The position numbers and the translations under genes were made by a program. Below, piece after piece: positions 12,956 through 42,148 of a stretch of 64,000 nt of DNA. A model generated the notes under the pieces. That model saw nothing but the letters and a program-made list of their open reading frames with translations, was not told the DNA's origin and ran no database searches. Source of the DNA: Rebecca billardiae RCC1528 (lineage: Eukaryota; Protista; Haptophyta); the NCBI GenBank assembly GCA_965240325.2, contig OZ251253.1, positions 558,001 to 622,000 of the forward strand. Direction: 5' to 3'. Position 1 is the first letter of the stretch, and each line of letters starts with the position of its first letter.

Positions 12956-14829
12956 CGCAGTAGCTTGGCAAGCGATGCGCCTCTCTGCGCGCGCTCGCTG
13001 GCTGCATCCGCGGCTCGGCGGCCGGCGTGGCTGCTGGGTCACCGCGGCGCTGGTGGCTGCCCCTCCTCTGGGAGTTGTTTCTTCCAGGTGCGTGTGCGTC
13101 GGCGGTAGGCCGCCCTCAGCCCTCGCTCTCTCCACTCGTGCACCTGCCCTGCTTGCTGCCAACGCGCGATCGGGCTGTCTGTCGCTTCTGCTCTCTGCGA
13201 GGGCACCTCGGACCCCTCCGGGTGCTCTCTGCTTTCGATGGGGGCGCCTCGGAACCGCTTCGAGGCGTCCCCGTCTGCAATCGTCCCATGCTCTGCTTTC
13301 GATGGGGGCGCCTCGGAACCGCTTCGGGGCGTCCCCGTCTGCAATCTTCTCATGCTCTGCTTTCGATGGGGGCGCCTCGGAACCGCTTCGGGGCGTCCCC
13401 GTCTGCAATCTTCTCATGCTCTGCTTTCGATGGGGGCGCCTCGGAACCGCTTCGAGGCGTCCCCGTCTGCAATCTCCGCATGCTCTGCTTTCGATGGGGG
13501 CGCCTCGGAACCGCTCCCAGGCGTCCCCGTCTGCAATCTTCTCACGCTTCGCAGTCTCGCTTGCCTTCATCGCCTGGCGGGTGGGTGCTGCTCTCTCCTT
13601 CTCTGCCGCCTCCTCTGCAGTCTGCAGTGCACTGCTGTGTGTGGGGATGCGACCTGCTACCTTATCTGACGCTACGCGTGCGCGTGCGTGTCTCGCGCCT
13701 GCTTCCCGCCTGCGCCGCCGCCGCCGCGCATGTCTTTGTGCCTACTCGTCGCACTTACCGTCGGGTTCGTCCTCACACAATCCTGCGGGGAGCCCCTCTG
13801 GGCCTCGGCCGCCTTCGGTCCTCGCGCTACCCCTTCGGCGGCCTCGGCCTCTTCGGGCCCCCGGCCACCACCCCTACGGGGTGTGGCATTCCACACCTCC
13901 TTCTGGGTGGAGGCCCTCGAGGCCTCTGCCCCCTGCGGCGCCGCGCTCGGCCCAAACTTGCGTTGGGGGAGGGCGTCGGCTGCCAGCGCCTGCGGTCTAT
14001 CTACGTGCTCCATCGAGTACTTCCTCTTCGGCGTCTAGGCGGTCGGCTTCTGTCGGCGTAGTTGCTCGAATGCATCGGCGAGTCCTTTCTGGTCGGCGTC
14101 GCATCCTGGACGGCTTCGGGGGTGTGACCTAGTCACCTCACGCGTTTGTCAACGCGGCCCCCACCTCAATCTACTCTCATGTGGGTCTACCGAGTGAGTT
14201 ATGGTTGTATAACCGCTCGGTTATGCGGGTATAACTCACCGGTAGCCCTCATGAGGGCGGGCTGGCAGCCCGGGTCCGGCTGCCCGAAGGTTTTCCGGTC
14301 GTCAAGCCGAGCCAGGCCCGGACAGGGGGTGGGCGCGGATCCGCGCAGTAGCTTGGCAAGCGATGCGCCTCTCTGCGCGCGCTCGCTGGCTGCATCCGCG
14401 GCTCGGCGGCCGGCGTGGCTGCTGGGTCACCGCGGCGCTGGTGGCTGCCCCTCCTCTGGGAGTTGTTTCTCCCTGCCCTCCCACCAGGCTGGTTGCTGGG
14501 TGGGCATGGCCTGGGTGCGCGCGGTGTCGGGGGGGGTGGAGGCCCTCGAGGCCTCTGCCCCCTGCGGCGCCGCGCTCGGCCCAAACTTGCGTTGGGGGAG
14601 GGCGTCGGCTGCCAGCGCCTGCGGTCTATCTACGTGCTCCATCGAGTACTTCCTCTTCGGCGTCTAGGCGGTCGGCTTCTGTCGGCGTAGTTGCTCGAAT
14701 GCATCGGCGAGTCCTTTCTGGTCGGCGTCGCATCCTGGACGGCTTCGGGGGTGTGACCTAGTCACCTCACGCGTTTATCAACGCGGCCCCCACCTCAATC
14801 TACTCTCATGTGGGTCTACCGAGTGAGTT
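12956..14829 (+). mobile_element. Split-direct-repeat (Ngaro/PAT-like) non-autonomous element, copy 1 (5'-truncated)
   Basis: Layout: A1 (partial, 12956-13082), internal region, B1 (13905-14202), A2 (14203-14470), spacer (14471-14533), B2 (14534-14829). This is the same A1..B1A2..B2 order as the recombinase element at 36715-42102. Confidence 0.8.
13226..13545 (+). repeat. Five 64-bp tandem units, each with a GC hairpin
   Basis: GCTTTCGATG at 13231, 13295, 13359, 13423 and 13487. Stem GGGGCGCCTCG...CGAGGCGTCCCC. Mirrored at about 15725-16045. Confidence 0.92.
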
Positions 14830-16453
14830 GCGCCGCGGTGACCCAGCAGCCACGCCGGCCGCCGAGCCGCGGATGCAGCCAGCGAGCGCGCGCAGAGAGG
14901 CGCATCGCTTGCCAAGCTACTGCGCGGATCCGCGCCCACCCCCTGTCCGGGCCTGGCTCGGCTTGACGACCGGAAAACCTTCGGGCAGCCGGACCCGGGC
15001 TGCCAGCCCGCCCTCATGAGGGCTACCGGTGAGTTATACCCGCATAACCGAGCGGTTATACAACCATAACTCACTCGGTAGACCCACATGAGAGTAGATT
15101 GAGGTGGGGGCCGCGTTGATAAACGCGTGAGGTGACTAGGTCACACCCCCGAAGCCGTCCAGGATGCGACGCCGACCAGAAAGGACTCGCCGATGCATTC
15201 GAGCAACTACGCCGACAGAAGCCGACCGCCTAGACGCCGAAGAGGAAGTACTCGATGGAGCACGTAGATAGACCGCAGGCGCTGGCAGCCGACGCCCTCC
15301 CCCAACGCAAGTTTGGGCCGAGCGCGGCGCCGCAGGGGGCAGAGGCCTCGGGGGCCTCCACCCAGAAGGAGGTGTGGAATGCCACACCCCGTAGGGGTGG
15401 TGGCCGGGGGCCCGAAGAGGCCGAGGCCGCCGAAGGGGTAGCGCGAGGACCGAAGGCGGCCGAGGCCCAGAGGGGCTCCCCGCAGGATTGTGTGAGGACG
15501 AACCCGACGGTAAGTGCGACGAGTAGGCACAAAGACATGCGCGGCGGCGGCGGCGCAGGCGGGAAGCAGGCGCGAGACACGCACGCGCACGCGTAGCGTC
15601 AGATAAGGTAGCAGGTCGCATCCCCACACACAGCAGTGCACTGCAGACTGCAGAGGAGGCGGCAGAGAAGGAGAGAGCAGCACCCACCCGCCAGGCGATG
15701 AAGGCAAGCGAGACTGCGAAGCGTGAGAAGATTGCAGACGGGGACCGGCCTGGGAGCGGTTCCGAGGCGCCCCCATCGAAAGCAGAGCATGCGGAGATTG
15801 CAGACGGGGACGCCTCGAAGCGGTTCCGAGGCGCCCCCATCGAAAGCAGAGCATGAGAAGATTGCAGACGGGGACGCCCCGAAGCGGTTCCGAGGCGCCC
15901 CCATCGAAAGCAGAGCATGAGAAGATTGCAGACGGGGACGCCCCGAAGCGGTTCCGAGGCGCCCCCATCGAAAGCAGAGCATGGGACGATTGCAGACGGG
16001 GACGCCTCGAAGCGGTTCCGAGGCGCCCCCATCGAAAGCAGAGAGCACCCGGAGGGGTCCGAGGTGCCCTCGCAGAGAGCAGAAGCGACAGACAGCCCGA
16101 TCGCGCGTTGGCAGCAAGCAGGGCAGGTGCACGAGTGGAGAGAGCGAGGGCTGAGGGCGGCCTACCGCCGACGCACACGCACCTGGAAGAAACAACTCCC
16201 AGAGGAGGGGCAGCCACCAGCGCCGCGGTGACCCAGCAGCCACGCCGGCCGCCGAGCCGCGGATGCAGCCAGCGAGCGCGCGCAGAGAGGCGCATCGCTT
16301 GCCAAGCTACTGCGCGGATCCGCGCCCACCCCCTGTCCGGGCCTGGCTCGGTTGACGACCGGAAACCTTCGGGCAGCCGGACCCGGGCTGCCAGCCCGCC
16401 CTCATGAGGGCTACCGGTGAGTTATACCCGCATAACCGAGCGGTTATACAACC
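14830..16453 (-). mobile_element. Split-direct-repeat element, copy 2 (inverted, 3'-truncated)
   Basis: Reverse complement of copy 1: full A1 (16453-16188), internal region, B1 (about 15363-15066) and partial A2 (about 15065-14830). Confidence 0.8.
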
Positions 16454-16592
16454 CTTAAACCATATTCATCAGCACGGCTTTCCACCCCCCATTTCTTCGA
16501 GTTGGTTCGTCGCGCGCATAGCGGACCAAGATTCTGGATGGATCATCAATCTGGAGGCAGCAAGCGGGGAAGAGCTTGTGTGCGTCTCGGCG

Positions 16593-19500
16593 ATGGCGAA
16601 GACCCTCACTATACGCTGCTCGCCAGCGCGGCGACTCCTCTCCACGCTCGTCGTGCTGGCGGCGATGGGCGTGGATCGCATGCCGCGGCATCTCCTCACT
16701 CGACTGGGGATCCTCGACGGGGCAGAGTACGCCGCCTCTGGCCCGCCCCTCGGCCCCGCGGTCGCTCGCGCCGAGGCCATCACCGCGGTGAAGGTGGGCC
16801 TCTACCACGCGTGCGTGCTCACGGACTCGGGCAAGGTGAAGTGCTGGGGCGACGGGCTGCACGCGGCGCTCGGCACTGGGGACATCTCTGATCGCGGGGC
16901 CAACCCGGGCGAGCTCGGCGTGGCGCTGCCGTACGTCGAGTTCCCGACCGGCCTCACCGTGACGCAGATCTCTGCGGGCGCGTACCACAACTGCGCCATC
17001 CTCTCGGACAGCACGCTGCGGTGGTGCGTGCGCGGCCCGCGCAGCACGGTGCCAGGCGCTGGCGCGCGTGCCACCGTGCGCGGCCGCTCACGTGGCGCCA
17101 CGCACCCGGCACCCGCCCGCGCTCGCCCCCCTCCGCGCGCGCGTGGCGCTTGCGTCGCACGCTCGTGCGCCCGCGCGCGCGCGCTCGCAGCTGGGGCGAT
17201 GGAGCGAACGGGCGGTTAGGTACAGGCGCGTCATCGGACATCAGCGACGTCCCCGGCGAGATGGGCAACGCGCTGGCCGCCGTCGACCTCGGCACGGGCC
17301 TCACGGCCAAGAGCGTGAGCTGCGGTCGCCGGCACACGTGCGTCGTGATCGTGCAGACGGACAGGCTCAAGTGCTTCGGGGAGAACGGGTACGGCACCTT
17401 GGGGACCGGCGACACGAGCGTGCGTGGCGCGCTCCCCGCAGAGCTGGGCGACGCGCTGCCCTACGTCGGCCTCGGCCTCACGACGGATCCCACCCCTGTG
17501 CCGCACGCCGTGGTGAAGCTGAGCGCTCGGTTCTACCACAGCTGCGCTCTGCTGGGGGAGGGGCTCAAGTGGTGTGCGCGCGCGCTGGCTGGCTGGCTGA
17601 GCGGCGGGCCGAGCGGCGGGCCGCCGCGCCGCGCCGGGCAGCGCGCCGAGTGCGAGCGCGCCGCGCGCGCGCTGCACCGCGCGGCGTGGGCGCGCCAGAG
17701 GCCTCGCGGGTCGCTCGGCCTCGGCGCGCTGACTGACGCGCCTGCGCCCGCTCCACCGCGCGCCGCCCTGCCTTCTCCATCGGTTCTTCTTCCTTTCTGC
17801 CTCCCGCCTGCGCTTCTCCGGACGTGTGCCGCCCGGCGCAGCTGGGGCCTGAACGACTTCGGGCAGCTGGGGTACAACGACGTTGTCAACCGCGGCGGCG
17901 CCTCCGCCGCGATGGGCGACACGCTGCCGTTTGTCGACGTCGGCGTGGCGGCAGCCAACCTGATCGACGTCAGTCTGAGCCAGTACCACACGTGCGTGCT
18001 GCACGCCGGCGGCAACGTCAAGTGCTGGGGCGAGGGTGCGAGCGGCCGGCTCGGGTACGGCGACTTGGCGGACCGCGGCAGCTCGGGTGGCATGGGCGCC
18101 GCGCTGCCCAACGTCGACCTAGGCGTGGGGCTCGCTGCCCTCGAGGTGCTGCACGGCAGCACCAGCACGTGTGCGCGGCTCAACAGCGGCGCGCTCAAGT
18201 GGTGTGCGCATGCGCGCGCAGATGCGCGCACGCGCGCGCCGCACGCCACGCGCCGCGCGTGCGCCCTCGCGTGGACGCGTCCGCGTCGGCAGCGGCGGCC
18301 GTTGGGCGCGCCGCCGAGCCCCGAGCCGTGCCCCCGCCGCCCTGACCGCGTGCGGCCGCACGCGCTGCTGCGCGCGCTCCGGCCCGGCCTGCAGCTGGGG
18401 CGGCAACTCTGTGGGCCAGCTAGGCTACGAGGACACGAGCACTCGCGGCGACGGCACTGGCGAGATGGGCGCCTCGCTGCCCACCGTCCCGCTGGGCACA
18501 GGGCGCACCGCGACCGCGTCCGACAGCCTCGACGAGTTTGTGTGCGCGCTGCTCGACGACGGCACCGTCAAGTGGTGCGCGCACACCGCGCCACGCACGC
18601 GCGGCGCGGTGCGCTGCCCGCGCAGGGCGGGGGGGGGCGTGTGCCGCGCGGGCGACCGGGGCGGCGGGCGGGTGCCGGCGTGTCCGTCTGCGCGGCGGGA
18701 GCGCGGGCGCGTCGATGCGCGTCAGCTGGCACCGACCACCGCCGTGCGTCGCGCCGCGCGTCGAGACGGCCCTGCTCGCCACGCCCACGCACGTGCGCGC
18801 CGCACGCCGCGCCTCCTCACTGCCCGCGTCCCGGGCGCGCCGCGCCCGCACGTCCGCGGGTCGATCGTGCAGCTGGGGCGTCGGCTCGAACGGGCAGCTC
18901 GGGCAGGGGAGCGGCGCCAACATCGGTGGTGCGTCCGGCTCGATGGGCGATGCGCTGCCGCCGATCGGGATCCTCCCGCCCTCGCCGCCGCCGAGCCCGC
19001 CGCCCTCGCCGCCTCCGAGCCCGCCGCCGTCACCGCCGCCGAGCCCGCCGCCGCCGCGCCCGCCGCCGTCGCCGCCCCCGTCGCCTCCACCGAGCCCGCC
19101 GCCGTCGCCACCGCCCTCGCCGCCGCCCTCGCCGCCTCCGCCAGTGCCGCCGCCCTCGCCTCCACCGCCCTCGCCGCCGCCCTCTCCGCCGCCCTCTCCG
19201 CCGCCCTCGCCGCCGCCGAGCCCGCCGCCGAGCCCGCCACCGTCGCCACCACCCAGCCCGCCGCCGCCCTCGGCTCCGCCATCGCCGCCACCATCGCCAC
19301 CGCCGAGCCCGCCGCCGAGCCCGCCGCCGTCACCGCCGCCGAGCCCGCCGCCGTTGCCGCCTCCATCACCGCCGCCATCGCCACCTCCAAGCCCGCCGCC
19401 GTCGCCACCGCCGCCGCTACCGCCGCCGTCGCCGCCACCCTCGCCACCTCCGTCGCCGCCGCCCTCACCGCCGCCCTCACCGCCGCCGAGCCCGCCGCCC

Positions 19501-22500
19501 TCGCCGCCGCCGAGCCCACCGCCCTCGCCGCCGCCGCCCTCGCCCCCGCCCTCGCCGCCGCCCTCGCCGCCACCGTCACCGCCGCCCAGCCCGCCGCCAT
19601 CGCCGCCGCCCTCGCCCCCGCCGAGCCCGCCGCCATCGCCACCACCCTCGCCGCCGCCCTCGCCTCCGCCCAGCCCGCCACCGTCCCCACCGCCGTCGCC
19701 ACCGCCCAGCCCGCCGCCGAGCCCGCCACCCCCAAGCCCGCCACCAAACCCGCCGCCGAGCCCGCCGCCGAGCCCGCCTCCCTCGCCACCGCCGAGCCCG
19801 CCGCCGAGCCCGCCGCCCGCGCCGCCGCCGCCCTTGCCGCCGCCCTCGCCGCCGCCCTCGCCGCCGCCCTCGCTGCCACCGTCCCCGCCGCCCAGCCCGC
19901 CGCCCTCGCCACCTCCGTCGCCTCCGCCGAGCCCGCCGCCCTCGCCGCCGCCGCCTTCGCCGCCACCCTCGCCGCCGCCCTCACCACCACCGTCACCGCC
20001 ACCGAGCCCGCCGCCGTCACCGCCACCGTCGCCTCCGCCGAGCCCGCCGCCCTCGCCGCCGCCACCGTCGCCTCCGCCCTCGCCACCGCCCTCGCCCCCG
20101 CCGAGTCCGCCGCCCTCGCCGCCGCCCAACCCGCCGCCCTCGCCACCGCCAAGCCCGCCGCCCAGCCCGCCACCGCCGAGACCTCCGCCGAGTCCGCCGC
20201 CGAAACCGCCACCAAGCCCGCCGCCGAGCCCGCCGCCGAGCCCACCGCCGTCGCCGCCGCCGAGCCCTCCACCCTCGCCACCGCCGAGCCCGCCGCCCTC
20301 GCCGCCGCCGCCCTCGCCGCCGCCCTTGCCCCCGCCCTCGCCGCCACCGTCACCGCCACCCAGCCCGCCGCCCTCGCCGCCACCGTCGCCTCCGCCGAGC
20401 CCGCCGCCCTCGCCGCCGCCACCTTCGCCGCCGCCCTCGCCGCCACCCTCGCCCCCGCCGAGTCCGCCGCCCTCGCCGCCGCCCAGCCCGCCGCCCTCGC
20501 CGCCGCCAAGCCCGCCGCCCAGCCCGCCACCACCGAGCCCGCCGCCAAGCCCGCCACCCAGCCCGCCGCCGAGCCCGCCGCCTTCGCCGCCGCCGAGCCC
20601 GCCGCCGTCGCCACCGCCGAGCCCGGCGCCCTCGCCGCCGCCGCCATCACCCCCGCCCTCGCCGCCGCCTTCGCCACCACCCTCGCCGCCTCCGAGCCCT
20701 CCGCCGTCGCCGCCGCCCTCGCCGCCTCCAAGCCCGCCGCCCTCGCCGCCGCCGCCTTCACCGCAGCCCTCGCCACCGCCATTGCCACCGCCGAGCCCGC
20801 CACCGTCACCGCCGCCCAGCCCGCCGCCGAGCCCTCCGCCAAGCCCACCGCCCTCTCCACCGCCGAGCCCGCCGCCGTCGCCGCCACCGAGCCCGCCACC
20901 CAGTCCGCCGCCTCCGAGCCCACCGCCGAGCCCGCCGCCCAGCCCGCCACCAAGTCAACCGCCCTCGCCACCGCCTTCGCCGCCGCCCTCGCCACCACCG
21001 AGCCCGCCGCCCAGCCCGCCGCCACCTTCGCCACCGCCATCACCACCGCCCTCGCCGCCGCCGTCGCCGCCGCCGTCGCCACCACCCTCGCCGCCGCCGT
21101 CGCCGCCGCCGTCGCCGCCACCGAGCCCGCCGCCGCCAAGCCCACCGCCCTCGCCGCCGCCAAGCCCGCCACCCAGCCCGCCGCCTTCGCCACCGCCGAA
21201 CCCGCCGCCGAGCCCGCCGCCCAGCCCGCCGCCCAGCCCGCCGCCGCCCAGCCCGCCGCCATCGCCACCGCCCTCGCCGCCACCGAGCCCGCCGCCGTCG
21301 CCACCGCCGTCGCCGCCGCCCAGTCCGCCGCCATCGCCGCCGCCATCACCACCGCCGAGCCCGCCGCCCTCGCCACCGCCGAGCCCGCCGCCGAGGCCGC
21401 CGCCCTCGCCGCCGCCGAGCCCGCCACCAAGCCCACCGCCGCCGAGCCCGCCGCCATCGCCGCCGCCGTCACCGCCTCCGAGCCCGCCGCCGTCGCCACC
21501 ACCGTCGCCGCCGCCGAGCCCGCCACCCTCACCGCCGCCCAGCCCGCCGCCGAGCCCGCCGCCGTCGCCACCGCCCAGCCCACCGCCGAGCCCGCCACCC
21601 TCGCCTCCGCCGAGCCCGCCACCAAGTCCGCCGCCGCCCAGCCCGCCGCCATCGCCACCGCCGTCGCCGCCTCCGAGCCCGCCGCCGTCGCCACCACCGT
21701 CGCCGCCGCCAAGCCCGCCGCCGTCGCCGCCGCCAGCACCACCGCCGAGCCCACCGCCCTCGCCACCGCCGAGCCCGCCACCGAGCCCGCCGCCGTCGCC
21801 GCCGCCCAGCCCGCCGCCTAGCCCACCGCCTCCGAGCCCGCCGCCATCGCCGCCGCCGTCCCCGCCACCAAGCCCACCGCCGTCGCCACCGCCGTCGCCG
21901 CCGCCGAGCCCGCCACCCTCACCGCCGCCAAGCCCGCCGCCGAGCCCGCCACCGTCGCCACCGCCCAGCCCACCGCCGAGCCCGCCGCCCTCGCCACCGC
22001 CGAGCCCGCCACCAAGCCCGCCGCCGCCCAGCCCGCCGCCATCGCCACCGCCGTCGCCGCCTCCGAGCCCGCCGCCGTCGCCACCGCCATCACCACCGCC
22101 GAGCCCACCGCCCTCGCCACCGCCCAGCCCACCGCCGAGCCCGCCGCCCTCGCCACCGCCGAGCCCGCCACCAAGCCCGCCGCCACCCAGCCCACCGCCA
22201 TCGCCACCGCCGTCGCCGCCTCCGAGCCCGCCGCCGTCGCCACCACCGTCGCCGCCGCCGAGCCCGCCGCCGTCGCCGCCGCCATCACCACCGCCGACTC
22301 CACCGCCCTCGCCACCGCCGAGCCCGCCACCGAGCCCTCCGCCGTCGCCGCCGCCGAGCCCGCCACCAAGCCCGCCGCCGCCGAGCCCGCCGCCATCGCC
22401 GCCGCCGTCACCGCCCCCGAGCCCGCCGCCGTCGCCACCGCCGTCGCCGCCGCCGAGCCCGCCACCCTCACCGCCGCCGAGCCCGCCGCCGAGCCCGCCG

Positions 22501-31500: not shown

Positions 31501-33476
31501 CGGGCCGTGCGCGTGTTGCAGCCGCAGCCACAGGCGGTCGAGGGCTCGGCGGTGCTGTCTGACGCACTCGCGCGCGCGCGCTTGGCGATCGACCGCTTCG
31601 ACCACTCGGAGGCAATGCAGCTGCTCGACGGCCTCGCGCAGACCCTCGCCGACCCCGCCGCCGCCGCCGCCGCCGCCTCCAACGGCAGCGCGCTCGTTGC
31701 CGCCATCGTGCAGCTGACTTCGCTGGAGGGGGCCGCGGTCGCACCGCCCACGCCCGAGGCGCGCGCGCAGTCGGCGGCGGCCCTCGCGGCGGCACTGGGC
31801 GCGCCAGTCGTGCTCGACACGTCCGCGCGCGCCGCCGGCCTCGCGCACGTCGCTGCGCTCGCCACCGCGTCCGCGGCCGCCGGACTCGACGACGCGACGG
31901 CGGGCGCCCTGCTCCGCTCGCTCGACAGCGCGCTCGGCGCGCCGGCAGGGGGCGCTCCGCTCTCGGCGGAGGAGGCGGTGGCGCTGGGCGGCGCGGCGCT
32001 CGAGGCGGCGTCGGGGCTGGCGGTCGCGCTGCTCGCCGGCGCCGTGCCGGGCGAGCTCCCGCTCTCGGCCACCTCCGCGCGCGTCAACGTGACCACCGCG
32101 CGCCGCACGGCGGCTGAGCTTGCACACAACGCGACGCTCGAGGGCGCGGGCGGCGGCGGCGCGCTCGCGCTGCCCGCGGCGCTGTGGGAGTCCGGGGGCG
32201 GCGCGGCGCCCGCGGGCGACGCGGCGGTGGACGTGGTGCTCATCTCCTTCCACGCCAACGTGCACGCCGAGCCCGCCAACCAGAGCGCCGGCGCGCTCGG
32301 CCCGCTGCGCACAGGCGTGCTGCGCGTCGCGCTGCGCGACCCGTCGGCCGGCGCCGAGATTGCAATCTCGGGGCTGGCGCAGCCCATCGTGATCGGCCTG
32401 CCGGGCGCGGCGGGCGCGGGGCCGGACGCGCCCGAGCCGTCGCCGTCGTGCGCCGACGGCGGCGCCGAGATCGCGCTGGGCATGGCCGCGCCGTGCAACG
32501 CGCGCGGCGCGTGCGTCAGTCTGCGCGCCGGGCTGCGCGGCTGCGAGTGCGAGCCGCCGTACCACGGGACCGAGTGCGGCCGCGCGGACGCGTGCCACTG
32601 GTGGGACGAGGCGCGGGGCGAGTGGTCGACAGAGGGGTGCGCCACGCTGGGCGCGCCGCCCGACGGCGCCGACCCGTCGCTGCTCTACTGCGCGTGCACG
32701 CACCTCACCGACTTTGCCGCCGTCTCCGTGCCCGCCTCGCCAGAGCAGGCGGCGGAGGAGGCGGCGGCGGTGCGCGTGAACACGTTCAGCGGCGCGGACG
32801 CCGCGTCGGTGCTCGCCACGCCCGCCGAGGGCCTCCGCGAGAACCCGACGATCTACCGGCTGGTCTACCTCCTCTCCGGGCTCAACGCGCTGTGCCTGCT
32901 GCTCGCCGCCGCGGCCGACCGGCGCGCGCTGCGCGAGTATGCTCGCTGGTATGAATCTGAGAGGGCCACGTCCGGACTGGCCACGTCCGGACTGGGCGAC
33001 GAGAGCGTCGGCGGTGGGGGCGGCAGCTACAGCCGGCGCAGCCGGCGCGGCTCGCCCGTGCCGCCCTCGCGCTGCTCGTCCGCGCCGCGCTCGCCGCCGA
33101 CCGCGCGCTCGCGCGCGCGCTCGCCCGAATCCTCGCGCGCGCGCTCGCCGCTCGGCAGCCGGCGCGGCACCGGCGCGCTCGACAGCGGGCTGGGCGGCGA
33201 GCTCGGCGCGGGCGCGGCCGGCGCGCGCGCGAGCGCCGCGGCCGGCGCGCAGCCGGCGACGACCGTCGAGCGCGTGCGCGCGCGCAAGGCCGCCGCCGCC
33301 GCCGCGGCCGCGAGCGCGGCCGCGCCCGCGCCGTGCTGCGCGCGCGACGCCGGCTCGGCGCAGCCCTTCGGCGCGCCGGGCGCCGAGCTGCGCTCGGCGC
33401 AGCTCGACGCGTACCTGGGCGCGAGGGCGGTTGTGGAGAGCAGCTACGCGGAGGAGCCCATGGCGGCGGTGCCGGA

Positions 33477-33507
<31 letters not shown>

Positions 33508-33954
33508 CAGCGGCGGGCGGACGGCGCCGCGCCCGCGCGCGGCGGCAGCGGCGGCGCCTCGCCCGCCGAGCCGCCTGCGCGCCGTGCGCCGCGCTCGCGC
33601 TCGCACTCGCCGCCCTCGCGCTCGCCGCCCTCGCGCTCGCCGATGCGGCGGAGCTCGTCTGTCTGGTCGCCCGCGCGCAGCGCCGCGCAGGAGATCGCCG
33701 AGCACCACGACCTCGGCCGGCGCTTCTCGACGAGGGCCGGCGGCTCTGGCGCGCGCCGCGGCGGGCGGCGCGGCGCGAGCCCGCTCGAGCGTGCGCGCGC
33801 CGTGCTCGAGGCGGTCGCGGACCAGCACACGCTGCTCGCGCTGCTGTTCGCGCGGCCCGAGCGCGCGCTGCGCCGCGCCGAGCTCGTGCAGACGCTCTTC
33901 AACACGCTCGCGCTGCAGGCGGCGCTCGAGTGCATGCTCTACTCGCAGGAGGAG

Positions 33955-34007
<53 letters not shown>

Positions 34008-36297
34008 CGTGCCGCTGCTGAGCGTGCTGCTGTACGCGCTGCTCGCGTGCGCGCTCGGGCTGCCGGCGCTGTGGGCGTTCAAGGGCGCGTGGCACCTCGC
34101 GCGGCACGACGGCCGCGCGCTGCCCGCGTGGCGGCTGTACCGCGGCATGCGCGAGCACCTCAGCGGCGCGCTCTCCGCGGACGCGCGCTCGCGCGCGCGC
34201 GCGAGCGAGATGGTGGCTGCAGGCAGCGCGCTCGCGCTCGCCGGGAAGATGCGAGGCGGCGGCGGCGGAGGCGGCTTCGGGCGGGGTGAGGCGGAGGGCG
34301 ACGGCGACGGCGACGGCGAAGGCCGGCGGGCGGGCGCGAGCACGCTGGGCTACCCAGCCGGCGCGCGGCGCCTTGGAGGCCCGCCGGCCGGGCGCAAGCC
34401 GGGCGGCGGCTCGTCGCGCGGCAGCACGGCCGCGGCGCCGCTCTCGTCCTCCGCCTCCGCTTCGACGCTGCGCTCCGCCGGCTCGGCGCGCTCGAGCGTC
34501 GGAGGCGGCGGAGGCGGGCCCGCGCCGCCGCTCGCGCGCCTCAGCCCGCGGCTCGAGGAGCCGGCGCCGGCGCCGGAGGCGTGCGCGGAGGGCGCCGAGG
34601 CCGAGGAGGTCGAGGCGGCGCACCGACACGGCGGCGCGCGCGGCGGCCGGCCGGGCAGCGGCGGCGGAGGCAGCCGGCCGGGCAGCGGCGGCGGCGGAGG
34701 ACGGCCTGGCAGCGCGCGCCGGCGCGTGCACGTGCCAGACGTGCCCACGATTGGCTGCGGCATCGTCGCGCCGCTGCAGTCGGGCGGCGCGCTCGCCGCG
34801 GGCGGCGCGGCGCGCGCGCGCGGCGCTGAGATCGCGCCCGGCGACGAGGAAGGCGCCGGCGCGGCGCCCGCCGCCGCTCATGCCGAGGCAGGCCGGCCGG
34901 CGCCGCCAGGCTTCCAGCAGCCGTACGTTCTCCCCGCGCGGCCTCGGCCGCGCTCGGCCGGCTCGGCGGGGCGCGGCGGCGGCAGCAGCAGCAGCAGCCG
35001 CAGCACGGCCTCGCGCGGCGGCGGCGGCGGGAGCAGCGCGGACGATGCCGCGCCCGCCGCCGCGCCGCCGCCGCGCAGACTCGTCGCCGCGCCCGTGCTG
35101 GGGGGCGGCTCGCTCAGCCGCATCACGCCCGTGCGCGCGCTCGTGGCGCGCGCGCCCGCCGCGCTCGACACCGCCGCGCCCGCCGCCGCCGCGCCCGAGG
35201 CCGAGGCGGGCGCGGCGGCGCTGGCGGGCGCGCCTTCGCCGCCGCCGTCGCCGCCGCCGGCGTCGCCGCCGCGCGGCCGCGCGGCCGCCACGGCGGGCGC
35301 CCCCGCGACGAGCGCGGCCGCGCCCGAGCCGGGCTCGGCCGCCGCGCCCGCGCCCGCACCCGCCGCCGGGCCGCGCCGCCCGCCCGCCCTTGGCCGCGGC
35401 AGCGAGTCGACAGACTCGCTCACGCCGCCCTCGCCGCGCTCGCCGCAACGGCGCGAGCGCCGCGCGGCGGCGACGCCGGCCGCGGCCGCGAGCGCCGCGC
35501 CCGCGCCGCCGCCGCCACTCGACGCACGCCGCAGCAGCTCGAGCGCCAGCCCCGGCGACGCGCCCAGCCCGCCGCCGGCGGCCGCGGCCGGCGCCGCCGC
35601 CGGCGCGCCCGCGGAGCAGCAGCGGGCGGCGCCGCCGCCGTCGTTCTCGCGCCGCTCGGGCGCGCTGTCGCGCGCGCAGAGCTCGTCGCTGCACCGCGCG
35701 CAGTCCGAGCTCACCGCCGCCGAGCTCTCCGCGCTGCGCGCCGCCTTCTCGCGCTGCGACTCGACGGGCGACGGGCGCGTGGACGAGGCGGGCGTCGGGC
35801 TGATCATGGCCGAGCTGGGCGACCCGCTGCTGCCGCACGAGCGGCGGCGGCTGCTGCGAGATCTCGATCTCGACGCCGACCTGCGCGTGGACGAGCTCGA
35901 GATGGTGGTGTGGTACGCGCGCCAAAAGGCGGCGGAGCGGCGCGCGGCCGAGTGGGCGCGCGTGCTCTGCCCGTGCCCGCCGCCGCCCGTCTGGGCGCGC
36001 TCGCCCCTCGCGTGGGCGGCCATGCTGGGCCTGTACACGGGCCTGTGCGCGCTCGTGATCGTGTACGGACGCCTGTTCGGCCGCGAGCGCACCGAGGCGA
36101 TGCTGGCGTCGTGGGCAGCGGCGCTGATCGGCACGTTCGCCCTCGAGGAGCCGCTGCTGCTCGCGCTCGGGCAGCTCGCGCCGTGGGCGGGGCGCGCGCT
36201 CGTCCGCAGCGGCGCGCTCGCCAAGCTCGCCGAATCCTCGCTCGTGCTCGGCGCGCGCGCCGCCCTCGACGCGGTGCGCTTCATCTTCAACGGCTAG
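16593..36297 (+). CDS. Giant polycystin-1/REJ-like GPS-domain membrane receptor (~6,258 aa); exons 16593-17023, 17191-17571, 17842-18201, 18395-18574, 18873-36297
   Basis: RCC1-like repeats (HACVL..G.VKCWG.G..G.LG); SPPP stalk; IPT/TIG (HPPAGPVGGGTVVTLEGVGF, VALNGQQY); REJ (LLLDASATVDP, NRPPHGGTL..GWS..LPLSYAF); EGF-like; GPS (CHWWD...WSTEGC...CACTHLTDFA); TM segments resembling PKD1 TM1-5 (YGRLF...SW...EEP); EF-hand pair (DSTGDGRVDE, DLDADLRVDELE). The four GT-AG introns give a continuous 18,777-nt frame. Confidence 0.88.
18975..28330 (+). repeat. Coding Ser-Pro3 (extensin/pherophorin-like) 12-bp repeat, ~9.3 kb
   Basis: Continuous (TCG/AGC)CCGCCGCCN units translating to SPPP without a frameshift. 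Confidence 0.97.
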
Positions 36298-37924
36298 CGC
36301 GGCGCGGCAGCGTGCCAGCGTCGTCGCCAAATGCCCGCGGTCAGCGCCGCGTGCCAGACGCACGCCGACTGGCGCGACCGGTGGCAAGCGTCGCACCGCC
36401 CGCCGGCGCGAGCGCGAGCAGACGAGCCTCGAACGCGCGTCGAGACCGGCCGCCATCATCTTATGCCGGGGCCTAGAGGGCCCGTCTGCCAAACAAACGC
36501 GCGAGCCGGCACGAAGCGCACGCCACTCGTCTGGCGGCCGCGCATCAGCAGCATGATATGATGTCGTGTTGCTGGTTAGCGGTGTCAGACAAGTCCGGAG
36601 AGACGAGAGGGTGATGAGAGAGATGACGACCGATACAGTGCTGTCACAGCAGCCGCAGCTATACTACTAGCGCAGTGCGATATGATACGCTACGTACGAC
36701 CCTACCTTACTTATATAACTGGGACCAGGCCCGCCTCGCGGCGGACTCGGCCCGCGGTCCGGCGGCAGCCGCGGGGGCGGCGGCCGGGTGACAGTAGCGG
36801 CGGAGCGCCCGACTGATATTCCTCCTTCCGCGCGACGCTCCGGCTACGCGGCTAAGGTAGCGATGGGCCTGCCGACCCCCCTCTTTGCCAGTCGCCCCGA
36901 CTCTGCCCGCAACCCGCGCTATCTAACGAGGGTCGCAGTTGATCAGCAAGGGGACTGGCTGAGGGGCGGCGGCTCCCGGCCACCGTCGCCACAACCGGAA
37001 CAAGCCATGCCCACCACAGTCGAGCCGGGTGGGAGGGCAGGGTGCGAAATCAGTAGCGACGCCACCGCCCGCACCCGAGGAGGAATAAGCCGACGGCCCG
37101 CTCGCAGCCGACGAGGGTTGCGCCCGCCCTTAGCCGAGGAGTCGCCACCGAGCGGGGTACGGTCGGTGGACCGAAGTGCTGCTGAGCAGCTGGGGCTATC
37201 AGCCCAGGCCCCGCCCCGCCTCGGCTGCCGAAGAGCAGGCCTGCCGCGGCCCGCATCGGCGGCGCTCAGAGGTAGAATCTACCGGTTCGGTACAGGCGGG
37301 TCCGGCTGCCCGTATATAGCCCGCCCAGGGGTCATACCGCTTCGCTGGGCGCGCACCCGACGCCCGGAGCTTGCTGCCCGCCCAGGCACGGTCCGGTCAG
37401 CCGCCCTAGCAGGTCAGCAGCGGTTAGCAGCATTGAGGAGCAGCCGATCATGGCGGCGGGCTGGCCCAGTTATACCCCTATAACCGAACGGTTATAGAAC
37501 AATAACTGGGACCAGGCCCGCCTCGCGGCGGACTCGGCCCGCGGTCCGGCGGCAGCCGCGGGGGCGGCGGCCGGGTGACAGTAGCGGCGGAGCGCCCGAC
37601 TGCTATTCCTCCTTCCGCGCGACGCTCCGGCTACGCGGCTAAGGTAGCGATGGGCCTGCCGACCCCCCTCTTTGCCAGTCGCCCCGACTCTGCCCGCAAC
37701 CCGCGCTATCTAACGAGGGTCGCAGTTGATCAGCAAGGGGACTGGCTGAGGGGCGGCGGCTCCCGGCCACCGTCGCGTAGAAGGGTGCCACACCTCGGAG
37801 AGGTGGAGGCCCGGTGGCCCGGGGGCCGGTGGCTCGAGGCCGTCCGGGCCGCCGCCGCAGAGGGGAAGGGTGGGAAGAGACGCGAGAGTCGAGTGCCAGC
37901 GGTGCCACAGGCGGTCGGCGCCAG

Positions 37925-38879
37925 TCAGCCAGGATCCGCAAAGGCGGCAGCCAGCCGAAGGCGCAGCTCCCGGCGCTCCGCCGCGCGGGGGAAATACGTC
38001 GCAGGGGCGGCGTTCCAGCGACCGGCCAGCGCGCGTTCCTGCCCCGTGAAGCCGAGGTGGTCAGCCACGGCAGCGGCGCACCGGCGCACCGAGTTGGTAG
38101 ACACGTCAGCGGGCCGCAGCCCAACTTCTGCGCCCACCCTGCGAAGCCAAGCCAAATAAGCCGAGTAGGGGACCGGTGCCCCCGAAGGGAGCACGAACAG
38201 GGGGTCGTCGGCCGAGGACTCCCGGGGGCGGCGAAGGAGGTACCTGCCCAATGCCGCCACTGGGCACAGCGGCGCACCCGCCGGTAGGCGGGGCAGGAGC
38301 TCAACCGCCAAGCGGCCCGCGTGGTGTTTCTCGCTGCGAAGGGTCACCAGGAAGCCGAGGGCGGTGGGTGCGAGGTCCCTGAGCCGGATGAACTTGGAGG
38401 ACCCGTACCGTGCGACTCCGGCCACGCACTCGGCCCGACACATCGTAAAAAATCTGCACAAGCAGCATGGCCCAGAAAGCAGCGTCACCATCGCGCACGC
38501 GTGCGCCGATCGCGCGGACCGAATCCAGCGAAAGCGCCGGGGCCGGGGCAGGCTGGCGGGAGGGGAGCCGCCGAAAAGCGGCGACGATGTGCTGACGTCC
38601 GAGGTCCCTGATGGGCCCGTCCTGCACACCCAGGACCTGAGCCGCCACCTGCACCGCCGACACGTATTGCGAGATGGTCGTGGGAGCTTTCCCCTGCAGC
38701 CCCAAGTGCGCCGCAAACAGCCGCAGGGCCAGGGCCGACGGGGGCCACACTGGCGCCACGCCACCCGAGTGAAAGAAGGCGACGTACGCTCGGACCCCCG
38801 CCGCGTTCGGGCCCGAGCCCACCGCCGCCGCCGCGAGCGCCACACACCCCGCGGCTGCGGCCACGATGGGGTTGTCCAT
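37925..38879 (-). CDS. Tyrosine recombinase (DIRS/Ngaro type) split by a 1-nt frameshift at the T6 run near 38450
   Basis: The N-half (ORF 38301-38879: LRLFAAHL...TTISQYVSAV) joins the C-half (FTMCRAE, LRSEK, LCPVAAL, PLF, STNSVRR, AGRW, ATYF) if one T is removed from ATTTTTTACG. Confidence 0.85.
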
Positions 38880-39149
38880 TACCGCCGGGTATTCCCGGCT
38901 TGTTTGCCCAGCATGAAGGGCCTCGGCCGCCTGGCGCTGAGTGGCGCTTGGAGGGTAGCGGCCGCCCGAAGCTCAAAGCCCACGCTGAAACCGACCGGAT
39001 CGCACCCGGCGGAGAGCGCAGGGCGGAGGCCCGCCCGCTGGCAGGGTCTTTGATAGGAACGGGCGCCGGGGCAAGGTCTGCCCGGTCTGCCGTGGTGAAG
39101 GCAGCGACGAAAGACGCCTGCCGCTGAGCGACGAGATCGCAAGAAGCGA

Positions 39150-39492
39150 CAGCACGCGATGTGCATATCGACCGCTGAGAGAATAAGGGATGGCAAGCCA
39201 GCGATGTGCACATCGCAGACCGAAGATGAGACTGCAAGCAAGCGATGTGCACATCGCTGAAAGGTGAGACTGCAAGGAAAGCGATGTGCATATCGCTGAA
39301 AGATGAGATTGCAAGCAAGCGATGTGCATATCGCTGAAAGATGAGATTGCAAGCAAGCGATGTGCATATCGCTGAAAGATGAGATTGCAAGCAAGCGATG
39401 TGCATATCGCTGAAAGATGAGATTGCAAGCAAGCGATGTGCATATCGCTGATGGAAGATGAGATTGCAGGAAAGCGATGCGCGGATCGCTGA
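39150..39492 (-). repeat. About nine 38-bp tandem units, each with the hairpin AGCGAT-ATGCAC-ATCGCT
   Basis: GCGATG recurs at about 39156, 39202, 39242, 39281, 39319, 39357, 39395, 39433 and 39474. The core units are identical and have no spacers. Confidence 0.93.
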
Positions 39493-39553
39493 ACGAAGAA
39501 GGGGGGGATGGCCGGGGGCGAGCCTGCGCGCCGAGCGGCGAGAACGCCCGGCG

Positions 39554-41638
39554 TCAAAGGGCCAGCGCCGCTTCGCCCGCCAACCGAGGCTCGGCCGCGA
39601 GCGAGCAGAGCTCGAGCCACATGTCAGCCGACGTCTCCCGGCGCCGGCTGAGGGCGTCGGCGAGGCGGTTGCGAGCACCGGGTGGATGGCAGCACCAGAG
39701 CGTGATCGCGTGCTCCGCCACCAGCAGCGAGAGGCGCTGCAGGAGGCCATTGAGCAGCGCCGAGCCCGGCACACGCCACCGGCGCAGCCACCCGAGGGCC
39801 ACCTTGCTGTCCGTGAAAAGGCGAACGTGGCAGCCCGCCAAGTACGGCGCCCACTCGATGGCAGCATGGAGGAGCATGTACAGCTCCATGTCTGCGATGT
39901 GCCTCAGCTCGCCCGACACGCGCAGCGACGCCAAGTCCTTGCGCAGCGCCCAGCCGTTGGAGCAGGCGGCGCCGCCGCCCGCCGCCTCCCAGGCGGCGTC
40001 GGTAGCAATCACCGGCGCGCCCACCGCCAGGCCCACCGGGCGGAACAGCCGCCGCCAGCCGGCACCCCGCTCGAGGAGCGCGGCGAAGAATGCGCACTCG
40101 CTGGGCAGCGCGGCGCCGAGCTGGTCAGGCCGCGCGGTGCGCGGCGCGAAGCCCCCACCGCCGCCGGGCGGGAGCGCCCCGCCCCCGCCCCCCGCCGCTT
40201 CGAGCGCCGCGCCGCCGGCCCCACCCAGCTCGGCGGGTGCGAGGCGAGGCCGCTGCGACGCCGCCCCCGCGTCGCGATCGCCCGCCGGCGCCGACCGCTT
40301 CAGCATAGGAGCGGCCGCGACCGCGGCGTTGGCCGCGCGCAGCGACGCCGACACCGCTTGCGCCGCCGTCAGCTCGGCGTTGAGCGCGCGCGCCTCGGCC
40401 GACTCGCTGTCGCGCAGGAAGAGGATCGATGACGCGCGGCCCGAGCGCCGCTCCTCCGCCGCGGCGGCAACGAACGATTTGTTCACCACCGAGAGGAGGG
40501 ACTCGGCGGGCATCAGGCCGCGCAGCTGCTCGAGCCACGACGAGAACTCGAGCGCCTCGGCCCGCATGGCCGGCGACCAATGAGAGGCTGGGGAGGGGTC
40601 ATCTGGCGAGGCGGCCGGGATAAACGTCGTCGTGAGGCAGCCCAGCAGCGCCTCGAGGGACTGGAAGGGCTGATCCTTCGGCTGCACCCCGCCGAGGAGA
40701 CGCCCCCCGCGAGAGAACTCGCGAGCGAAGCGCTCCCCCAGGCCTGGAAATGCCTGGACCATATCGCGCAGGTTGTAGCTCGTGCAGAGCTGGCCAGACG
40801 AGTCGCGCACCACGAGCGCGCGGGGCGCGTCACGCGCCGGGTCCGCGACCACCCGGCGCGCCGGGCCGGCCCCCGACGACGCCCCCGCCTGCTCCGACAT
40901 CGCCTGCATGAGCGCCGCCACCGACTGGGCCGAGAACCCGAGCCCGGCGGCGTGAGCGGGCAGCGCGGCGGTAGAGGCAGGGCCAGCAGCGCCCCCCGGC
41001 GCGCGGTCGGCCGCCGCCGCCGCCGTTCCCGCCGGTAGCGCGGTAAGGCCGGGGGCGAGCGCGTGCGCCGCGAGGCCCGCAAGCAGCGACGACGGCGCGG
41101 CCGCCGCCGCCGCGCCCGCCGCGTCCAGCGCGACCGAAACCCCGGGAGCAGCAGAAGCAGCCGCTCCGAGCGTGGGTGCGAGGCTGGGGAGCAGCGGATC
41201 CGAGGAGGCAAGCGGAGGCATCGCCGCCGCGGCCGCCGCTGGGACCGAGGTGGGCGGGCGGGGCAGCGCGGCCGGGACGGTAGGCGTCGGGGCGAGCAGG
41301 GCCGGCGCCGCCAGGGCGAGCCCCGCCGCCCCCGCCGGGACCAACGCGGCGAGCTGGGCCAGCAACGGCGACAGCTGCGCCAGCTGCGCGGTGAGCTGCG
41401 CCGCGACGCCGACGCTGAGCGGGATCCCCTCCACCGGGTGCGCCGGCGGGACCAGCGCGGCACTCGCCGCTAGCGGGGCACTCACCGACGGGGCCGCCGG
41501 CGCCGCCGACGCGGGCACGGGTCCTTGAGCGTCTTGAGCACCGCCGCGACCCGTGGCCGGGCCCTGTCGCTCGCGAGTGCGGCCGCCGCGGAGGGCCACC
41601 AGGCGCCCCAGCGAGAGCGCAGCCGAAATGCAGATCAT
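39554..41638 (-). CDS. Gag-like / DIRS-type RNase H fusion protein (694 aa, no RT domain)
   Basis: The C-terminus carries IATDA...HIADMELY...VRLFTDS...HPPGARNRLADALSR, the DIRS1-type RNase H with D-E-D-D intact. The N-terminus is Ala/Pro-rich then helical; Gag-like is inferred from position. No Y/F-x-DD RT motif seen. Confidence 0.85.
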   Translation of the reverse strand: MICISAALSLGRLVALRGGRTRERQGPATGRGGAQDAQGPVPASAAPAAPSVSAPLAASAALVPPAHPVEGIPLSVGVAAQLTAQLAQLSPLLAQLAALVPAGAAGLALAAPALLAPTPTVPAALPRPPTSVPAAAAAAMPPLASSDPLLPSLAPTLGAAASAAPGVSVALDAAGAAAAAAPSSLLAGLAAHALAPGLTALPAGTAAAAADRAPGGAAGPASTAALPAHAAGLGFSAQSVAALMQAMSEQAGASSGAGPARRVVADPARDAPRALVVRDSSGQLCTSYNLRDMVQAFPGLGERFAREFSRGGRLLGGVQPKDQPFQSLEALLGCLTTTFIPAASPDDPSPASHWSPAMRAEALEFSSWLEQLRGLMPAESLLSVVNKSFVAAAAEERRSGRASSILFLRDSESAEARALNAELTAAQAVSASLRAANAAVAAAPMLKRSAPAGDRDAGAASQRPRLAPAELGGAGGAALEAAGGGGGALPPGGGGGFAPRTARPDQLGAALPSECAFFAALLERGAGWRRLFRPVGLAVGAPVIATDAAWEAAGGGAACSNGWALRKDLASLRVSGELRHIADMELYMLLHAAIEWAPYLAGCHVRLFTDSKVALGWLRRWRVPGSALLNGLLQRLSLLVAEHAITLWCCHPPGARNRLADALSRRRETSADMWLELCSLAAEPRLAGEAALAL

Positions 41639-42148
41639 GATGCGAAATCAGTAGCGACGCCACCGCCCGCACCCGAGGAGGAATAAGCCGACGGCCCGCT
41701 CGCAGCCGACGAGGGTTGCGCCCGCCCTTAGCCGAGGAGTCGCCACCGAGCGGGGTACGGTCGGTGGACCGAAGTGCTGCTGAGCAGCTGGGGCTATCAG
41801 CCCAGGCCCCGCCCCGCCTCGGCTGCCGAAGAGCAGGCCTGCCGCGGCCCGCATCGGCGGCGCTCAGAGGTAGAATCTACCGGTTCGGTACAGGCGGGTC
41901 CGGCTGCCCGTATATAGCCCGCCCAGGGGTCATACCGCTTCGCTGGGCGCGCACCCGACGCCCGGAGCTTGCTGCCCGCCCAGGCACGGTCCGGTCAGCC
42001 GCCCTAGCAGGTCAGCAGCGGTTAGCAGCATTGAGGAGCAGCCGATCATGGCGGCGGGCTGGCCCAGTTATACCCCTATAACCGAACGGTTATAGAACAA
42101 TATATATTAACGACGTGGTATGCAACGGGCAGGCGTCAGTGATTAAAC

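Follow-up and report, generated by a model that had tools for sequence, protein, structure and literature searches.

The window analysed here is a 64,000-nucleotide stretch of the haptophyte Rebecca billardiae RCC1528 (assembly GCA_965240325.2, contig OZ251253.1, positions 558,001 to 622,000 of the forward strand). It holds two elements built on split direct repeats, in which two modules recur in the order A1, B1A2, B2. We call these elements el1 and el2, and four motifs proposed to be common to both are named M1 to M4, in order. The first element is short and non-coding, and the second is a defective copy of a Ngaro-like family that encodes a Gag-like protein, a reverse transcriptase (RT) with RNase H, and a tyrosine recombinase (YR). 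The A and B modules of the two elements are largely different. What el1 and el2 do have in common is three short islands, M2, M3 and M4, found at equivalent structural landmarks, and the most conspicuous of these is a nested palindrome lying exactly on the B1/A2 junction. Feature positions are collected in Table 1; C and L handles denote contigs and loci of our own numbering.

Table 1. Elements, modules, genes and motifs in the window (el1 and el2; z, fold relative to shuffles; SW, Smith-Waterman score)
Feature	Position	Strand	Basis or value
el1 copy, non-coding split-direct-repeat element	12953-14829	+	self-BLAST; comparison with full-length 2,018-bp copy L032
el1 (+) A1	12953-13085	+	self-BLAST
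el1 (+) M1, array 64 nt x 5; unit TGCAATCT..CAT..CTTTC, then 12-bp hairpin	13227-13548	+	Tandem Repeats Finder
el1 (+) M2, hairpin GCCACCACCCC-TAC-GGGGTGTGGC then A; ends 16 nt before B1	13864-13888	+	SW 42 vs el2; z -2.8
el1 (+) B1	13905-14200	+	self-BLAST
el1 (+) M3, nested palindrome over B1/A2 junction; outer left arm is 3' end of B	14194-14239	+	z -7.7
el1 (+) A2	14201-14473	+	self-BLAST
el1 (+) M4, hairpin CCCTGCCCTCCCACC..GGTGGGCATGGC, begins at A2 end within 60-nt spacer	14472-14510	+	SW 55 vs el2; z -3.3
el1 (+) A2-B2 spacer, 60 nt, single-copy	14474-14533	+	
el1 (+) B2	14534-14829	+	self-BLAST
Second el1 copy, inverted, 3'-truncated, tail to tail with (+) copy	14830-16453	-	99.7% identical to (+) copy; module map
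Inverted el1 copy, full A1	16453-16185	-	
Inverted el1 copy, array	15720-16043	-	
Inverted el1 copy, B1	15363-15068	-	
el2, defective copy of Ngaro-like family	36715-42102	-	self-BLAST; sibling copies with 1,476 bp more, encoding RT
el2 A1, 462 bp	42102-41641	-	self-BLAST
In-frame Gag-like/RNase H fusion open reading frame, 694 aa, product of 1,476-bp RT deletion	39554-41638	-	
el2 M1, array 38 nt x ~8; unit TGCAATCTCATCTTTC-AGCGAT-ATGCAC-ATCGCT-TGCT	39189-39493	-	Tandem Repeats Finder
Tyrosine recombinase gene, broken by 1-nt insertion (GCAG-A-TTTTTT)	37925-38879	-	alignment with three intact copies
el2 M2, hairpin GCCTCCACCTC-TCC-GAGGTGTGGC then A; ends 9 nt before B1	37786-37810	-	z -1.0
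el2 B1, 275 bp	37776-37502	-	self-BLAST
el2 M3, nested palindrome over B1/A2 junction	37465-37510	-	20 pairs, all paired, 3 compensatory; z -6.2
el2 A2	37504-37043	-	self-BLAST
el2 M4, hairpin in A2-B2 spacer; arms identical to el1, loop different	37003-37042	-	BLAST 84% over 44 nt; z -0.4
el2 A2-B2 spacer, 53 nt	37042-36990	-	
el2 B2	36989-36715	-	self-BLAST

The forward-strand copy of el1 lacks the first 138 nt of A1 when compared with a full-length, equally non-coding copy elsewhere in the genome. The inverted copy next to it has its A2 cut at 14830. We found no credible open reading frame (ORF) in el1, as its long ORFs translate to Arg/Leu/Ala/Gly-rich sequence without any domain. Counted by the M4 pattern, about 54 copies are present in the 72-Mb genome. 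At least nine of them are approximately 100% identical, which indicates that the family moved recently.

Several rearranged forms also occur. The breakpoints of the inverted tail-to-tail el1 pair lie at different internal positions, and a similar pair occurs at a second locus (L047/L038/L050, C5:96792-104728); such recurring inverted pairs hint at snap-back or palindrome-driven rearrangement. Modules also form multimers in tandem, arranged as [A-int-B][A-int-B][A-M4-B] on C1 (L040/L037, C1:2275835-2281872) and as [A-int-B][A-M4-B][A-M4-B] on C8 (C8:2501622-2503950, pattern coordinates). Furthermore, solo A-M4-B units (L021, L023) and A-int-B forms (L003, L004, L046) are present. These multimers and solo forms are what one would expect if recombination takes place at each B|A junction, but unequal crossing-over could produce them equally well.

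Sibling copies of el2 in the same assembly share its layout, with the internal repeats 3' of the recombinase gene, and have 1,476 more bases, located at el2 position 1980. These bases encode a reverse transcriptase, which in one sibling matches RVT_1 above the Pfam cut-off (E 3.9e-8, L004:3514-5268). The description of el2 as belonging to an RT-less family, made in the original prediction from the window alone, was therefore mistaken, because el2 is an RT-deleted copy of an RT-bearing family. The copy in the window is doubly defective, with an in-frame RT deletion and a frameshifted recombinase; the RNase H match of its fusion ORF is weak (E 0.014). By contrast, the gag, RT-RNase H and recombinase ORFs are all open in the copy at C20:1651903-1660839 (L004/L008). 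At least four RT+/YR- copies at different loci carry one identical 850-bp recombinase deletion, so this defective form spread after the deletion had arisen. The family is a mixed population of one copy with three open ORFs, RT+/YR- copies and RT-/YR+ copies. Its youngest copies are complementary cripples: the RT+/YR- loci are C17:1127648-1136656, C3:2437075-2445760, C20:384737-393706 and C16:599249-606210, and the copy in the window is RT- with the recombinase frameshifted. Deletion breakpoints show 3-4 nt of microhomology (CCA, CGTC). Overall, the el2 family looks like a multi-component population living on trans-complementation.

An exhaustive search retrieved 576 homologues of the el2 recombinase, and R173, K209, R290, W313 and Y320, out of the catalytic set R, K, H-x-x-R, W/H and Y of tyrosine recombinases, are invariant in their alignment. 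Phage_integrase (Pfam) was matched by 14 of 30 homologues, and the family profile matches Cre at 3e-24. In Pfam, the 585-aa ORF2 matched RVT_1 only and neither ORF1 nor ORF3 had a match, so that no methyltransferase was recognised, in the sense of an absent match only; lack of this domain sets Ngaro apart from PAT and DIRS1. By its architecture (split direct repeats, the order Gag-like, RT-RNase H, YR, and no methyltransferase match) the el2 family is Ngaro-like as PMC4157794 and PMC8547959 define the group. Outside this species, the closest RTs in the database share only 23-32% identity. The gag-like ORF1 and the RT-RNase H ORF2 lie in one frame, split by a single TAG (..GRI*EAAAAAGG.., at 2355-2357 of the C20 copy, sense orientation). 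This codon is kept in three copies, L004/L008 (C20), L005 (C17) and L003 (C5), which suggests stop-codon read-through, as in some retroviruses.

Full-length el1 was compared with el2 by Smith-Waterman alignment, taking the best score of 60 dinucleotide shuffles as the null. The best local matches fall at three sites, M3 (score 55; 49 for the A1 copy of M3), M4 (55) and M2 (42). Shuffle best scores averaged 33.7 (sd 2.5) and reached at most 39, while the remaining real matches did not exceed 35. The three sites are collinear, with el1 1031-1074, 1383-1422 and 1657-1699 corresponding to el2 4275-4317, 4596-4635 and 5061-5102. Uniform residual similarity between the elements is ruled out, as the sequence beyond the three motifs scores no higher than shuffles do.

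These results agree with much of the original prediction. Its two split-direct-repeat elements with largely different A and B are borne out by self-BLAST and Smith-Waterman alignment, and the alignment that it proposed as a check found the similarity to be motif-focused. It had also announced four ordered motifs in common; M2, M3 and M4 do stand collinear above noise, and M1 falls short of this (p ~0.08). All four had been called structured, which holds for M3 in both elements and for M2, M4 and the M1 unit in el1, and fails in el2 for M2, M4 and the M1 unit (z -1.0, -0.4 and -0.8).

That G+C-rich sequence produced the similarity by chance is, in our view, barely credible. The M1 linker match taken alone would be compatible with chance, and the M2 score lies only modestly above the shuffle maximum. 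However, two of the matches exceed the null mean by about 8 sd, all three are collinear at equivalent landmarks, and the control patterns occur in the genome 10 to 17 times less often. For M3 and M4, the alignment scores and shuffles contradict chance.

The junction palindrome M3 reads GTTAT-N6-ATAAC-N6-GTTAT-N6-ATAAC in both families and is the most structured of 196 windows along el1. All 20 pairs are retained in both families, three of them being compensatory and a fourth compensatory pair being hidden by an alignment gap. As a single strand, M3 forms a nested hairpin. Its inner stem (TATAACCG/CGGTTAT) occupies the extreme 5' end of A, and in its outer stem the terminal 9-12 nt of B are paired with part of A immediately 3' of the small hairpin at A's 5' end. 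The fold makes the 3' end and the 5' end of the element adjacent nucleotides. Owing to G-U pairs, folding is stronger on the sense strand than on the antisense strand. As duplex DNA, the same sequence presents four GTTAT half-sites at 11 bp spacing. The inner stem and the junction core are the same in el1 and el2, save for the loop base.

In el1, variation of the M2 hairpin within the family is mostly in the loop, and two variants that occur once each also alter one stem base. Compared with el1, the el2 hairpin shows one compensatory pair (C-G to T-A). For M4, almost all variation within the el1 family is likewise in the loop. Between el1 subfamilies about 10% of alignment columns differ overall, whereas the motif positions differ at 2 of 160, both in hairpin loops (binomial P ~1e-5; the value is approximate, as indel columns are counted and the clustering of changes is ignored). 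M2 and M4 have 5' arms that look alike by eye, and we considered whether they are two copies of one hairpin type; this was rejected, since neither retrieves the other above noise. No known RNA family reached threshold.

In both elements a tandem array occupies the corresponding place, with five units of 64 nt in el1 and about eight of 38 nt in el2. The el1 unit forms a strong hairpin (z -5.1), with one compensatory stem change in a subfamily unit, and the el2 unit has a 6-bp stem that folds no better than shuffles. Common to both units is the linker TGCAATCT..CAT..CTTTC, whose unit-versus-unit score is equalled in 7.9% of shuffles. M1 as a common motif is weak.

The identical M4 arms also raise the question of transfer. 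Template switching or gene conversion, acting for instance on RNAs packaged together, could have carried the shared patches from one family to the other, in which case not all of them would be functionally needed. The breakpoint microhomology of the el2 variants is typical of RT template switching and would fit this explanation. However, it needs three separate patches of 25-45 nt at structurally equivalent places, with family-specific differences of which some are compensatory. Moreover, the patches are constrained within el1, and the M3 architecture is kept by distant families (see below). We therefore give transfer little credence.

Searches of the 72-Mb genome indicate that the M2, M3 and M4 patterns are almost confined to copies of these two families. 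The M2 pattern gave 103 matches against 6 for its control, nearly all of them el1 or el2, and the M4 pattern gave 82 against 8, with 54 of el1 type and 7 of el2 type. M4-like repeats also lie at C17:2147294/2151217, C31:480188/484690 and C31:745764/751370. For the M3 core there were 299 matches against 25 in the control, and the 100 of 299 places that were listed, all exact, carry only the el1 or the el2 loop. A third family in this genome did not emerge: the pattern of the M1 linker with another hairpin start behind it yielded just 5 scattered matches, and no match was obtained for the four-half-site layout when its central spacer begins with a base other than C.

The two families also share an insertion signature. 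In every insertion that can be interpreted, the sequence is flank-AT|KGTTSTATAACCG...AGTT|AT-flank. A single AT stands at the internal B1/A2 junction. The junction core AGTT-AT-KGTTSTATAACCG and the TTAT/AT signature are common to el1 and el2. Among el1 flanks, 21 of 26 on the 5' side end in AT and 15 of 16 on the 3' side start with AT. The two bases before AT in the 5' flanks favour T (18/26 and 14/26) in a genome with roughly 60-70% G+C outside simple repeats, which points to a TTAT-like target. Two insertions hit palindrome arms directly. At L048 (C10:2440151-2440190) an el1 copy is inserted within the palindrome of an el2-family element, at CGGTTAT|, and another copy (L038/L050; C5, ~101584) has entered an inverted el1 through its right outer arm, at GGTGAGTTAT|. 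Thus, the GTTAT half-site itself serves as a target.

To look outside this species, three unrelated families were fetched through recombinase and RT homologues; the bracketed stretches in the following are paired arms. In famX (L063, L064; ENA assembly, 37% G+C) the mapped B1/A2 junction reads [GGAACTG]-T-GGGGA-[TATGACC]-GCCTGG-[GGTCATA]-ACTCT-[CAGTTCT] (z -3.0, rank 3 of 676 windows). The mapped junction of famY (L066; NCBI assembly, 46% G+C) reads [GGTGTAATT]-GTGTTGG-[TATGGCC]-AATCGG-[GGTCATA]-CCGGGG-[AATTTCACC] (z -3.4, rank 1 of 807). The M3 architecture thus recurs in two distant Ngaro-like families. It is probably also present in a third, L062, from a metagenome (YR 47% identical), where [GGGAG]-TGTTATGCGTC-[TATAATCG]-GCA-[CGATTATG]-GTTGCTCG-[CTCCC] (z -3.55) sits 3' of the recombinase gene, where the junction would be expected; this junction is unmapped, the contig being too short for the repeats. 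The L062 family was not found in this genome, and exact M3 and M4 patterns found no relatives in the JGI metagenomes. The outer stems of M3 are wholly different between families and complementary within each, and the inner stem covaries around TATRRYC (TATAACCG/CGGTTAT, TATAATCG/CGATTAT, TATGACC/GGTCATA).

The other motifs recur less regularly in these relatives. L062 has an M2-like hairpin, GCCACGC..GCGTGGCA (z -2.3), and a short-unit tandem array between RT-RNase H and YR. An M4-like stretch in L062 is not significant, as the L062 tail reaches Smith-Waterman scores of only 22-27 against el1 and el2, and the stretch does not fold. The RT and YR genes of famX are only about 60 nt apart. A C-rich tract with CCACC directly follows A2 in el1 (14474-14486), el2 (37042-37028), famX (L064 14108-14125) and famY (L066 12913-12935); read antisense, it is a purine-rich run abutting the repeat, seen in four families from three organisms.

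In our view, el1 is probably a non-autonomous, non-coding Ngaro-like element that is mobilised in trans by el2-family proteins, with the shared sites being the cis sites those proteins need. It would be copied and inserted by the Gag-like protein, the RT-RNase H and the Cre-like tyrosine recombinase of that family. The helper/parasite relationship of the original prediction is in line with this, being supported by the lack of a credible ORF in el1, the common junction core and TTAT/AT signature, the near-exclusive motif patterns and the open three-ORF copy on C20. Its further proposal, that the motifs define the minimal replication signals, exceeds the data, for M3 lies on the junction, the roles of M2 and M4 are positional only, and M1 is weak, with no array apparent in two distant relatives that keep M3.

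A different helper is conceivable. The shared motifs could be lineage-wide features of Ngaro-like elements, and el1 could be moved by another family or by an unseen element with el1-type repeats. One such family exists in this genome, with an RT protein 51% identical to that of the el2 family and open frames of ~575 aa. It looks recently active, as at least seven near-identical copies are present (C24:650101-651774, C11:73128-74801, C11:2487313-2488986, C14:1854847-1856520, C18:219812-221485, C1:3347256-3348929 and C13:2783813-2785486). The M3 architecture and the TATRRYC inner hairpin of distant families would also fit. However, no exact M2, M3 or M4 pattern lies near these seven loci among the matches listed (for M3, 100 of 299), and none of 107 genome matches is a coding element carrying el1 repeats. 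In addition, el1 shares its inner stem, its junction core (bar the loop base) and its target signature with el2. For these reasons we consider a helper other than the el2 family unlikely.

If el2-family proteins do mobilise el1, M3 would be the circle-closure and recombinase site, with the crossover beside the left half-site and insertion into TTAT-like targets. Its location exactly on the recombination junction makes a circle-closure or integration site likelier than a priming or packaging signal. M4 fills the sole single-copy stretch 3' of the junction unit and begins at the end of A2, the position that a primer-binding site takes after a long terminal repeat (LTR); by this position it is a candidate start of first-strand complementary DNA (cDNA), possibly self-priming. 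We rejected the M4 3' arm as a tRNA primer-binding site, since its pattern gave 8 matches against 4 for the control, none tRNA-like, and no tRNA-like gene has matching acceptor ends. M2, which lies 9-16 nt before B1 and hence at the place of a polypurine tract, is by its position a candidate second-strand primer or RT stop. The M1 arrays may bind Gag or have no function.

Because the roles of M2 and M4 are read from position, these motifs, and perhaps M1, could instead be transcription or RNA-processing signals for host factors, such as a terminator or a stability or export signal. Both hairpins are rich in G+C and lie near the transcript's 3' part, and no primer was found among the tRNA-like genes compared with the M4 3' arm. 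On the other hand, their patterns hardly occur outside two element families, which would be expected of signals specific to the elements and not of signals used across the host, and M4 begins at the A2 boundary in both. A host-signal function is thus improbable to our minds, about as much so as transfer between the families.

Several observations weigh against mobilisation of el1 by the el2 family through these sites. The M2 and M4 hairpins of el2 fold no better than shuffles, and M4 has identical arms in both families, so its pairing is not backed by covariation. The full motif set occurs in two families of this genome only, and the M2 and M4 statistics therefore amount to one cross-family comparison and one partial outgroup, the M2-like hairpin of L062. 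The A2-B2 spacers of the outside families are long (1.1 kb in famX, 478 nt in famY) and no array is seen in the short gap between RT and recombinase, which implies that M1 and a compact M4 are not general. A-internal-B copies without A2-M4-B2 are known in both families. A search of sequencing runs turned up no RNA run containing the element. Finally, the el2 recombinase reads N-S-V-R, with Asn replacing the His that the family has in H-x-x-R.

A more far-reaching idea, which we put forward only tentatively, is that a portable cis-module, made up of A, B, the palindrome at the junction and the hairpin on either side of it, is all an Ngaro-type RT and recombinase need, and that the single-stranded DNA splints its own ends through M3. 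In single-stranded cDNA, the 3' end of B would pair beside the 5' hairpin of A and so allow circle closure.

Little is known about how YR retrotransposons prime reverse transcription, close their circles and choose targets. This genome amounts to a deletion experiment made by nature, in which a 2-kb non-coding element keeps only a few short sites in common with its likely helper. One of these sites, the junction palindrome, is found again in distant relatives, where its stems covary. The two families thus provide a short list of sequences to mutate and a minimal element for a retrotransposition assay. M3 also suggests a simple rule for locating the termini of Ngaro-like elements.

About 20 kb separate el1 from el2 and are taken up by an unrelated giant repeat-rich ORF (ORFs 17021-28537 and 18538-36297, +). 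Within it lies a 9.3-kb imperfect tandem array (18985-28319) with a 12/36-nt period (CCGCCGCCGAGC) and 82-89% G+C, unrelated to el1 and el2. Just beyond el2, a second array (44209-45201) consists of about 45 copies of a 22-nt unit (CCAGCGAGTCCTCCAGGATGCG) at 95% identity. A 46-nt inverted repeat, with its arms at 42149-42194 and 44056-44101, flanks this 22-nt array.

Much of what is described here is already known for YR retroelements, namely the element class, a junction oligonucleotide in common with the target, solo A-B units and deletion variants. As in Ngaro elements such as those of Cafeteria (PMC8547959), the repeats are split and direct (A1-[ORFs]-B1A2-B2), the genes follow the order Gag-like, RT-RNase H, recombinase, and no methyltransferase is matched. 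There is no real target-site duplication either, and solo A-spacer-B units and deletion variants occur as reported for Cafeteria (PMC8547959). Unlike Ngaro, el1 and el2 have an A2-B2 spacer cut down to one hairpin of 53-60 nt, and the el2 family has a tandem array between RT-RNase H and recombinase and a gag/pol split by an in-frame TAG. In the open-access literature that we searched, key reviews lying outside this scope, we found no description of a nested palindrome at Ngaro B1/A2 junctions, of a conserved spacer hairpin, or of an unrelated non-coding partner family sharing only such islands.

LTR retroelements have a primer-binding site directly after the LTR and a polypurine tract just before it. 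If B plus A is taken as an LTR, M4 lies immediately after it and M2 just before. The roles proposed here are putative, and the likeness has its limits: the search for a complementary tRNA came up empty, M2 falls short of a clean purine run, and B begins 9-23 nt after the hairpins. The recombinase profile recalls Cre, and M3 resembles loxP in having inverted 5-bp half-sites (GTTAT/ATAAC) 6 bp apart, with a crossover that would adjoin the left one. In contrast to loxP, M3, as a putative binding site, has four half-sites instead of two, its spacers I and III are mutually complementary, and the target shares the TTAT half-site only.

The TOC1 element of Chlamydomonas is non-autonomous, its split repeats are unusually arranged, and it contains an internal tandem array of 76-bp repeats; its likeness to el1 is a lead only. 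The Toc group belongs to the PAT elements (PMC4157794), on the PAT/DIRS side, and the likeness is one of described layout. Short non-coding elements that use the proteins of another element and share recognition sequences only are also familiar from SIRE and VIPER, the latter being bordered by SIRE-derived repeats (PMC7192593). Further examples are short and long interspersed nuclear elements, terminal-repeat retrotransposons in miniature or large retrotransposon derivatives with LTR elements, and miniature inverted-repeat transposable elements. Those pairs share a whole terminus or tail, whereas el1 and el2 share three islands of 25-45 nt at structural landmarks inside unrelated repeats.

In DIRS-1, which has a 3-bp circular junction, the internal sequence holds the joined termini, and the internal complementary region is experimentally essential (PMC7192593, PMC3266345). 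DIRS1-like elements integrate at a short oligonucleotide common to junction and target, NTT there and (TT)AT here (PMC3266345, PMC7192593). A hairpin near the 3' end of DIRS-1 has been proposed as primer, with no primer determined (PMC7192593), and M4 as a candidate first-strand start is in line with this proposal. We rejected membership of el1 and el2 in the DIRS1-like group, which is marked by inverted terminal repeats and an internal complementary region, because their repeats are direct by self-BLAST. DIRS-1 has inverted terminal repeats and an internal region complementary to both termini, whereas in el1 and el2 the complementary stretches are short and join the 3' end of B to the 5' region of A in a nested palindrome. 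If the idea of a portable module is true, this palindrome would solve an open problem of split-direct-repeat elements, playing the part that the internal complementary region plays in DIRS-1.

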